Source of the DNA: Octopus sinensis
Taxonomy: Eukaryota
Assembly: GCF_006345805.1 (NCBI RefSeq)
Contig: NW_021829832.1
Location: 186,001 to 250,000, forward strand
Direction: 5' to 3'
Length of the DNA stretch: 64,000 nt
Within the stretch, counting starts at the first letter, position 1. Every line of letters begins with the position of its first letter. This document shows, one piece after another, positions 7,253 through 7,824 of this stretch. The position numbers were made by a program, and so were the translations under genes. A model generated the notes under the pieces. The model had not been told where the DNA came from and searched no databases. It was given only the letters and a program-made list of their open reading frames with translations.

Positions 7253-7824
7253 ATGAGCAAAAGATCGAGTGCTGCTCGAAGTCGTATCCTCAAAGTTGTT
7301 AAGCAGAACTGACTTAAATAGGAAATAACCATGATGCAGAAAGAGCCAAACGAATTTTGCAGTGCAGGGCCAGTAGATCCAGACGACGGTATTCGTTTTG
7401 TTGTTATTCCTAGTTTTCACGTGGAGAGGCTTCATCTTTGGGCCTGTAATGTTGATGATGTGAGAATCCTAGGAGGGGACTGATTACGAAGGCGGGAAAT
7501 TCGAACTCGATATCAAATTTCCCGCTGATTATCCCTACAAACCTCCAAAAATAATCTTCTTGACTCCAATATATCATCCAAACATAAATAATAAAGGTTC
7601 CATCTGTATGGACACGTTGGCCGAACAGTGGTCGTCCGTTTTGACCATTTCCAAGGGTTTTAGTTTAATTATTTTATTCAGTTTTGCTGTCGATTATTTT
7701 GATGTTGGGGAACCCTAATCCAGACGACCCGTTGGTCCCCGAGATTGCTAGATTATATAAAAACGATAGAAAAGAGTTCTCCCAACGTGCCCGCGATTTT
7801 ACTAGAAAACACGCACAGCCGTGA
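7253..7824 (+). CDS. UBE2D: Ubiquitin-conjugating enzyme E2, UBE2D/E (Ubc4/5) type; 5 exons
   Basis: Removing introns 7295-7321 (27 nt), 7389-7413 (25), 7446-7472 (27) and 7657-7681 (25), all GT-AG, gives a clean ORF: [16 protein letters not shown]...[38 protein letters not shown]...HAQP*, with the catalytic Cys. Confidence 0.95.

Follow-up and report, generated by a model that had tools for sequence, protein, structure and literature searches.

The 64-kb stretch of DNA examined here, called the window below (64,000 nucleotides of contig NW_021829832.1, positions 186,001 to 250,000 of the forward strand), carries ultra-short introns in all of its cellular genes, among them a gene for a UBE2D-type ubiquitin-conjugating enzyme (E2) at positions 7253–7824. 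The existence, sizes and signals of these introns can be seen directly. With high confidence, they are ultra-short U2-type GT-AG spliceosomal introns of the dicyemid type, and the genome is most likely that of a dicyemid, probably Dicyema japonicum; judging from the sequence, a conventional spliceosome would excise them from the RNA. Introns of this kind form the shortest class known in animals. They are a published hallmark of dicyemids and of myxobolid cnidarians, in which they are ordinary, and the architecture is already described whether the window is of dicyemid or of myxobolid origin.

The E2 gene extends on the forward strand from an ATG at 7253 to a TGA at 7822–7824 and comprises five exons (7253–7294, 7322–7388, 7414–7445, 7473–7656 and 7682–7824). 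These are separated by introns at 7295–7321 (27 nt, phase 0, GT..TAG), 7389–7413 (25 nt, phase 1, GT..TAG), 7446–7472 (27 nt, phase 0, GT..TAG) and 7657–7681 (25 nt, phase 1, GT..CAG). An earlier sequence-only reading of the window had proposed four introns of exactly these lengths, whose removal would restore a conserved protein, and both proposals hold: the coordinates are exact and all four introns are of the form GT...AG. Without splicing, the region is closed in all three frames. The spliced coding sequence of 468 nt yields a product of 155 amino acids that matches positions 1–139 of the 140 in the Pfam profile UQ_con (E=4.6e-49) and aligns over residues 4–153 with human UBE2D1 and UBE2D2 through all four junctions, with a single one-residue indel distant from every junction. 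The HPN motif and the catalytic cysteine are retained.

The same class of introns recurs throughout the window. A curated set of 113 GT-AG introns was assembled from its 11 cellular genes, with lengths of 23–33 nt, a median of 26 nt and a mean of 26.0 nt; 109 of them (96%) are shorter than 30 nt. None of the 113 is shorter than 23 nt, and none of the 11 genes requires an intron longer than 33 nt, while the median internal exon measures 134 nt. The search admitted GT-AG ends only, and it is within these terms that all 113 introns start with GT and end with AG. In 10 genes, removal of the introns produces a continuous frame and a conserved protein, as judged by Pfam, PDB and homolog alignments. 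Moreover, 36 junctions in the genes for E2, katanin, cullin, D-Tyr-tRNA deacylase (DTD) and neutral sphingomyelinase are independently fixed by homolog alignments. The sequence-only reading had placed ultra-short introns in every host gene, at 23–32 nt outside the E2 gene, and the curated set agrees with it, extending the upper end of the range by one nucleotide. Its description of the sushi and TMC genes as animal-like and of the code as standard also stands. The sushi, TMC and TRRAP genes are animal genes, and TGA (in six genes), TAA and TAG all serve as terminators, the stops of the E2, katanin and cullin genes falling where their homologs end.

Gene models were built by naive dynamic programming, then by a model trained on codon usage, splice-site matrices and length, and then by homolog-guided correction. 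The naive procedure, which maximised stop-free length under a flat intron penalty, was rejected: it strayed into non-coding DNA and exchanged true introns for shorter spurious ones, as with a 25-nt katanin intron modelled at 22 nt and E2 introns modelled at 22 and 35 nt. The trained model was still wrong at the 5' end of the E2 gene and in the middle of the TMC gene, both of which were adjusted manually with homologs as a guide. Also discarded as non-discriminating was a histogram of every GT-AG pair bridging open frames, since overlapping open frames permit any length. As a control, a flat model was applied that considered GT-AG pairs of 12–80 nt and used neither splice-site scores nor a length prior. 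It placed 65 of 104 sense-strand introns at 23–33 nt, with a peak at 23–29 nt, whereas in the antisense direction of these regions only 31 of 141 fell in this range, in a flat distribution with no peak. Because the flat model keeps the peak on the sense strand only, the length peak at 23–33 nt lies beyond chance.

The splice signals of the 113 introns are sparse. The 5' site reads G|GT(T/A) and the 3' site (T/C/A)AG; acceptors comprise 57 TAG, 34 CAG, 21 AAG and 1 GAG. Information content is at most 0.5 bit at each position other than GT and AG, with a preference for G at −1 (63%) and for either T or A at +3, and, the single GAG aside, no G at acceptor position −3. Intron interiors are rich in T (43%) and poor in GC (30.5%) relative to exons (40.4% GC). 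Counted from the 3' end, a weak A peak lies at −7 in 23-nt introns and at −9 to −10 in 28–29-nt introns; the share of A at −7 to −10 amounts to 44–70% depending on length class, and YTRAY occurs in 33 of the 113 introns at no fixed position. The same length-dependent shift of the A site has been described in D. japonicum and myxobolids (PMC13644364). The base at +3 also varies with length, being A in 60–64% of the 23- and 25-nt introns and in 9–30% of the 26–29-nt introns, most of which have T or G there. The dependence may reflect either a genuine link between 5' site strength and length or slipped boundaries in the models.

We read these features as those of ordinary U2-type introns reduced almost to the minimum that a spliceosome can process, here 23–33 nt with a median of 26 nt. 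They retain only the reduced terminal signals described above, a T-rich, GC-poor interior and a weak A-rich, branch-like site 7–10 nt upstream of the 3' end. The narrow length range and the length-shifting A peak are compatible with the steric minimum of a conventional spliceosome. The window itself contains no spliceosome component and lends no support to the reduced, length-measuring spliceosome that the sequence-only reading had proposed. The only published check of the spliceosome, made in myxozoans, found a conventional U2 small nuclear RNA and U2AF (PMC13644364). As to the origin of the introns, all five in a gene for a sushi-repeat protein are in phase 1 and lie at module borders. Since this is the usual exon structure of sushi modules, the pattern suggests shrunken ancestral introns rather than new insertions.

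An altogether different explanation would see in the interruptions the frameshifts and insertions of decaying pseudogenes, faults of the assembly, or DNA excised at the genome level in the manner of the internal eliminated sequences of ciliates. Splicing is read here from reading frames and homology rather than from RNA, which leaves room for such a view, yet we regard it as highly improbable. Each of the 113 interruptions runs from GT to AG, all within a size range of 11 nt; their T-rich, GC-poor composition sets them apart from the exons; and in 10 genes conserved proteins emerge at full length, catalytic motifs included, once they are removed. The eliminated sequences of ciliates are bounded by TA, and Paramecium uses a non-standard code, whereas the code here is standard. 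In addition, RNA-supported introns of this size have been published for D. japonicum (PMC6736024).

Source lineage of the genes

That the genes belong to a dicyemid mesozoan, probably D. japonicum, is the most likely interpretation, and one in which we place considerable confidence as far as dicyemid origin is concerned. The sequence-only reading had pointed to dicyemids among the organisms with introns of such sizes, and the published intron architecture of this group does match that of the window (PMC6543705, PMC6736024, PMC13644364). The genome of D. japonicum comprises 67.5 Mb, with 36.7% GC, 48.9% repeats, many copies of the second open reading frame (ORF2) of long interspersed nuclear elements (LINEs) and very small introns (PMC6736024). 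With 36.5% GC, the window lies close to this genome and far from the myxozoan Henneguya salminicola (29.1%; PMC13644364). Its load of LINE and Tc1 elements is heavy, with at least three non-long-terminal-repeat (non-LTR) elements bearing reverse transcriptases, and this also fits D. japonicum. The best matches of the katanin product reach at most 54% identity and come from bilaterians throughout, headed by an annelid and bivalves; no myxozoan appears among the 120 matches listed.

The same kind of intron would also be expected if the genome were that of a myxobolid myxozoan (Henneguya, Thelohanellus or Myxobolus) or of a third, undescribed lineage. The median of 26 nt is near that of H. salminicola (27 bp), and dicyemids and myxobolids have in common the reduced GT and AG signals with a shifting A peak (PMC13644364). 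No direct match to a Dicyema record ties the window to dicyemids by sequence. We nevertheless consider a myxobolid or third-lineage origin unlikely. Beyond the gap in GC content, no curated intron is shorter than 23 nt, whereas the median in Thelohanellus kitauei is 22 bp (PMC13644364). Mean intron lengths in myxobolids are 240–507 bp, and Myxobolus honghuensis contains very little LINE sequence (PMC8855578); against these long introns and scarce LINEs stand the absence of any intron above 33 nt and the presence of at least three non-LTR elements in the window. Finally, no T. kitauei protein is found among the 120 listed katanin matches, all of them bilaterian; proteins of this species are deposited at NCBI.

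Several points weigh against reading these as spliceosomal introns of D. japonicum. Apart from the reliance on frames and homology for splicing itself, the automatic models needed correction by hand at the 5' end of the E2 gene, the last katanin intron and the middle of the TMC gene. About one third of the introns, namely those of an unnamed coiled-coil protein gene (gene11), of a multi-EF-hand protein gene and of parts of the TRRAP-like gene, are backed by frame and splice signals only. At +3, T (44%) is more frequent than A (33%), whereas the published logo reads 'GTa' (PMC13644364). Lastly, the species call is drawn from composition, repeat content and intron statistics, with no confirming sequence match.

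In-frame stops in introns of 3n length

Introns whose length is a multiple of three (3n introns) leave the frame open if retained, save for any stop codon that they contain. They make up 29 of the 113 introns (26%, against 33% expected, p=0.09), a count confounded by the under-detection of stopless 3n introns. An in-frame stop is present in 23 of the 29, as opposed to 32 of the 84 non-3n introns (p=2e-4). In five well-conserved genes, in which hidden introns would show as insertions, the corresponding numbers are 8 of 10 and 9 of 26 (p=0.025). The 23 stop-containing 3n introns are split 15:4:4 over the three phases. All 15 in phase 0 end in a TAG acceptor, compared with 6 of the 26 non-3n introns whose final NAG is in frame; the overall share of TAG is 50%. 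Both 3n introns of the E2 gene are in phase 0 and end in TAG, which places the terminal stop in frame automatically, and each, if retained, would present an in-frame TGA as codon 6 and the TAG as codon 9.

These figures invite the proposal that translation-coupled surveillance, i.e., nonsense-mediated decay (NMD), shapes the introns as in Paramecium, with 3n introns selected to carry an in-frame stop; the expectation itself derives from work on Paramecium and other ciliates. We regard it as less likely than not. It draws on the stop excess overall and in the five conserved genes, on the TAG acceptors of phase-0 3n introns and on the low share of 3n introns. However, detection via broken frames favours stop-containing 3n introns and is blind to stopless ones, and all four figures are inflated by it. 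A simple null was accordingly reasoned from the counts, with 50% TAG, 33% internal stops, detection of 0.67 in phase 0 and about 0.38 in phases 1 and 2, and only stop-containing 3n introns detected. It yields the 15:4:4 split and puts the true number of 3n introns at about 45, close to a third of all introns. What exceeds this null is the ratio of 8 of 10 to 9 of 26 in the conserved genes and the TAG in 15 of 15 phase-0 3n introns, where about 75% would be expected. This residual stop excess is suggestive; it comes from a small sample, drawn from 64 kb and with some bias left in it. Nor does the window contain an NMD factor, its PIKK gene being TRRAP and not SMG1.

Stopless 3n introns also argue against such surveillance as a general rule. 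Six of the 29, of 24 or 27 nt, lack an in-frame stop, and four of these are backed by exact gaps of 8–9 residues in homologs. Two lie in the cullin gene on the forward strand, at 20705–20728 and 21625–21648; both are 24-nt, phase-2 introns that correspond to exact 8-residue insertions relative to CUL1, and with the former deleted, the match to Pfam Cullin improves from 354.4 to 364.8 bits. A third, in the TRRAP-like gene (472–498, forward strand, 27 nt, phase 2), corresponds to a 9-residue insertion relative to human TRRAP and is the top-scoring in-exon 3n GT-AG candidate. The fourth, in the TMC gene (41769–41795, forward strand, 27 nt, phase 2), coincides exactly with 9 residues that have no counterpart in C. 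elegans TMC-1. The remaining two, both in gene11 on the reverse strand (63584–63607 and 63497–63523), are called from splice signals alone. Stopless 3n introns thus exist and are not rare, and retention is not policed universally. By the measure of Paramecium, nearly all 3n introns should carry an in-frame stop, whereas 6 of 29 here do not. Frame-based gene models read such introns as coding and gain 8–9 spurious residues from each; automatic annotations of genomes of this type probably contain many such introns.

Further candidates were considered in the same genes. Positions 668–694 of the TRRAP-like gene were rejected as an in-exon 3n intron on account of a gap-free alignment with human TRRAP, and the 3n GT-AG candidate at 2508–2531 is ambiguous. 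In the TMC gene, positions 40729–40752 on the forward strand remain a candidate 24-nt stopless intron with a strong T-run before TAG; the alignment with C. elegans TMC-1 begins just after it. Its removal seems to restore the conserved stretch that precedes a presumed TMC motif, 'FG.G..SYF'. In the DTD gene, the stretch 26030–26075 on the forward strand includes 8 inserted residues, around residues 14–22, that human DTD1 lacks. A hidden intron was sought there and dismissed, as the region has no 24-nt GT-AG pair and the sole 39-nt pair would over-delete; the stretch was kept as coding and represents a genuine insertion or else an intron of non-canonical type.

The sequence-only reading had taken the in-frame TGA of both 27-nt E2 introns as what would be expected if NMD polices retention. 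The stops are indeed there; the policing argument is anecdotal and ascertainment-biased, and the six stopless 3n introns contradict it as a general statement. It is possible, though rather doubtful, that the 3n ultra-short introns of an animal lineage are selected to carry an in-frame stop, of which the clearest sign would be the TAG acceptor in phase 0. If true, transcripts retaining 3n introns would be removed by translation-coupled surveillance. Targeted literature searches found no dicyemid-specific analysis of in-frame stops in 3n introns.

Gene models and transposable elements across the window

Cellular genes are interspersed with transposable elements in this DNA, whose overall GC content is 36.5%. 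From the left edge enters the 3' part of a TRRAP-like gene for a PIKK pseudokinase (14–4083, forward strand; 19 introns of 23–29 nt), whose product aligns with residues 2656–3727 of human TRRAP as one HMMER domain (E=2.8e-54) and contains the Pfam FAT domain; the 3' end of the model is uncertain. Downstream of the E2 gene, a membrane protein with six sushi/CCP repeats is encoded at 8178–9878 on the reverse strand, with 5 introns of 23–29 nt and six Pfam Sushi stretches (E=1.4e-41). The katanin p60-type AAA ATPase gene (11987–13510, forward strand) encodes 455 amino acids that include the AAA domain (1–131 of 131) with its lid, Vps4_C and MIT. Its 6 introns are found at 12152–12176 (25 nt), 12320–12347 (28 nt), 12561–12588 (28 nt), 12695–12720 (26 nt), 12880–12906 (27 nt) and 13034–13058 (25 nt), the last of them verified by eye. 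All junctions are gap-free in the alignment with the Daphnia homolog, four of them in the AAA region, and one adjoins a gap in the variable N-terminal part in the alignment with that of Mercenaria.

Three further genes follow on the forward strand. The multi-EF-hand protein gene (15662–18698), matched by Pfam EF-hand families, has 13 introns of 23–33 nt, which are identical in the naive and trained models. The Cullin-1 gene (19214–21966; 17 introns of 23–29 nt) encodes 774 amino acids that match positions 1–604 of 620 of Pfam Cullin (364.8 bits) together with the Nedd8 domain, and align with residues 17–774 of human CUL1. A diphthamide synthase (DPH6-type) gene at 23147–24000 has 6 introns of 23–32 nt; its product matches Pfam Diphthami_syn_2 over 2–192 of 219 and aligns with PDB entry 3rjz, and the 3' end of the gene model is provisional. 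The DTD gene (25998–26554, forward strand) carries three introns of 23, 24 and 30 nt, and its product matches Pfam Tyr_Deacylase in full (1–144 of 144) as well as residues 1–148 of human DTD1.

In the right half of the window, the TMC (transmembrane channel-like) gene (40350–42726, forward strand; 13 introns of 23–29 nt) was curated by hand at 41900–42300, which extended the match to Pfam TMC from 1–36 to 1–111 of 111 positions (E=1.1e-28); the product aligns with C. elegans TMC-1. A neutral sphingomyelinase (SMPD2-type) gene lies at 56381–57669 on the reverse strand, with 6 introns of 25–28 nt, a complete Pfam Exo_endo_phos match (1–225 of 225) and similarity to human SMPD2 (E=2.7e-37). Gene11 (60958–63973, reverse strand) leaves the window at its right edge and contains 21 consecutive introns of 23–29 nt, modelled from frame and splice signals. 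No Pfam family matched its product. The first 11 introns (62666–63777, reverse strand) are all in phase 1 between short exons, a pattern that suggests repeated modules without a detectable Pfam domain.

Long uninterrupted open reading frames (ORFs) belong to transposable elements, whose ORFs of 330–459 amino acids are free of short introns. Tc1/mariner transposases were located at 35908–36963, 42953–43600 and 49757–50749 on the forward strand and at 27493–28296 on the reverse strand. A homology search with a Tc1 transposase gave best matches of at most 48% identity, and an exact look-up of the Tc1 transposase ORF found no recorded protein. The copies at 49757–50749 and 27493–28296 represent one transposase and are identical over the first ~240 residues; the former is an intact ORF of 330 amino acids and the latter diverges C-terminally. 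This suggests recent transposition. The ORF at 35908–36963 is a different, intact transposase of the Sleeping Beauty type. Non-LTR reverse transcriptases are encoded at 4991–6336 (forward strand), 10115–11491 (reverse) and 37790–38800 (reverse), and a domain-less ORF at 39063–39809 (reverse) apparently belongs to the same element as the last of these. One of the three blocks carries an open reverse transcriptase ORF of 459 amino acids, and none is interrupted by short introns; one directly follows the TRRAP-like gene and one directly precedes the TMC gene. A pogo/Tc5-type remnant occupies 46493–47490 on the forward strand, and an ORF at 44175–44603 (reverse) resembles, from the translation as read by eye, the C-terminal part of a Pif1/Helitron-type helicase. 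The region 45454–46467 (forward) was called a spliced gene by the gene finder, a call that was rejected; it is a tandem repeat block whose translation shows a recurring 'NAENFFLIFFGGK' motif. Rfam and tRNA scans of the window revealed no rRNA, tRNA or small nuclear RNA gene.

Comparison with known systems

Introns below 30 nt probe the lower size limit of the spliceosome. Standard gene finders and aligners for RNA-seq overlook them, and annotating a genome of this kind requires awareness of them. This lesson has already been published, for dicyemids in 2010 and 2019 and for myxobolids in September 2026. To it, the window adds a hand-checked set of 113 introns, proof that frame-based intron calling misses stopless 3n introns, and a hint of TAG-acceptor preference in phase-0 3n introns.

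Among ciliates, reportedly, Jaillon and coworkers described in 2008 a translational control of retained short introns in Paramecium. The 25-nt introns of Paramecium and related ciliates (Bondarenko and Gelfand, 2016; PMC5014332) belong to the same length class as those of the window, in which 3n introns likewise show a modest excess of stops. However, Paramecium uses the ciliate code, and its signal is genome-wide, whereas the window has the standard code, 6 of 29 3n introns without a stop and an excess that may be due to ascertainment. The introns of Stentor coeruleus measure 15–16 nt (as cited in PMC13644364). From what that source relates, Stentor resembles the window in its standard code, its very narrow range of intron lengths and its apparently conventional spliceosome, and differs in that its introns are much shorter, near-invariant in length and those of a ciliate, whereas the genes of the window are animal genes.

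Myxobolids come closer. Hadjez et al. (2026; PMC13644364) found the same intron size class in this group and state that, of 51 animal genomes compared, no other but that of D. japonicum shows it. The median is 27 bp in H. salminicola and 22 bp in T. kitauei and Myxobolus rasmusseni (PMC13644364). Size class, reduced 5' and 3' signals, the A-rich site before the 3' end and the compact genome of a parasitic animal are all shared with the window. In contrast, myxobolids have cnidarian affinities, where those of the window are bilaterian-like, and H. salminicola has a GC content of 29%. Myxobolids also contain little LINE sequence, show a long-intron tail, with means of 240–507 bp in T. kitauei and M. 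honghuensis, and in some species have a mode of 22 bp, with nothing below 23 nt in the window.

Dicyemids are closest. Short introns were reported in 40 genes of D. japonicum (Ogino et al., 2010, Gene 449:70, as cited in PMC6543705), and introns of this size in the same species are supported by RNA-seq (Lu et al., 2019; PMC6736024). In Dicyema sp., automatic predictions give a median intron of 27 bp, with about two thirds below 30 bp (Zverkov et al., 2019; PMC6543705), as against 96% in the window. Reduced 'GTa' and 'AG' signals combined with a length-dependent A stretch were described for the dicyemid and myxobolids alike (PMC13644364), and the preference for T over A at +3 in the window departs from this logo. 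Structurally, nothing differs between the two: Dicyema and the window share a median of 26–27 nt with most introns below 30 nt and several per gene, nearly consensus-free GT-AG introns with an A-rich site that recedes from the 3' end as length grows, and a GC content of about 36.5% in DNA rich in LINEs and other repeats.

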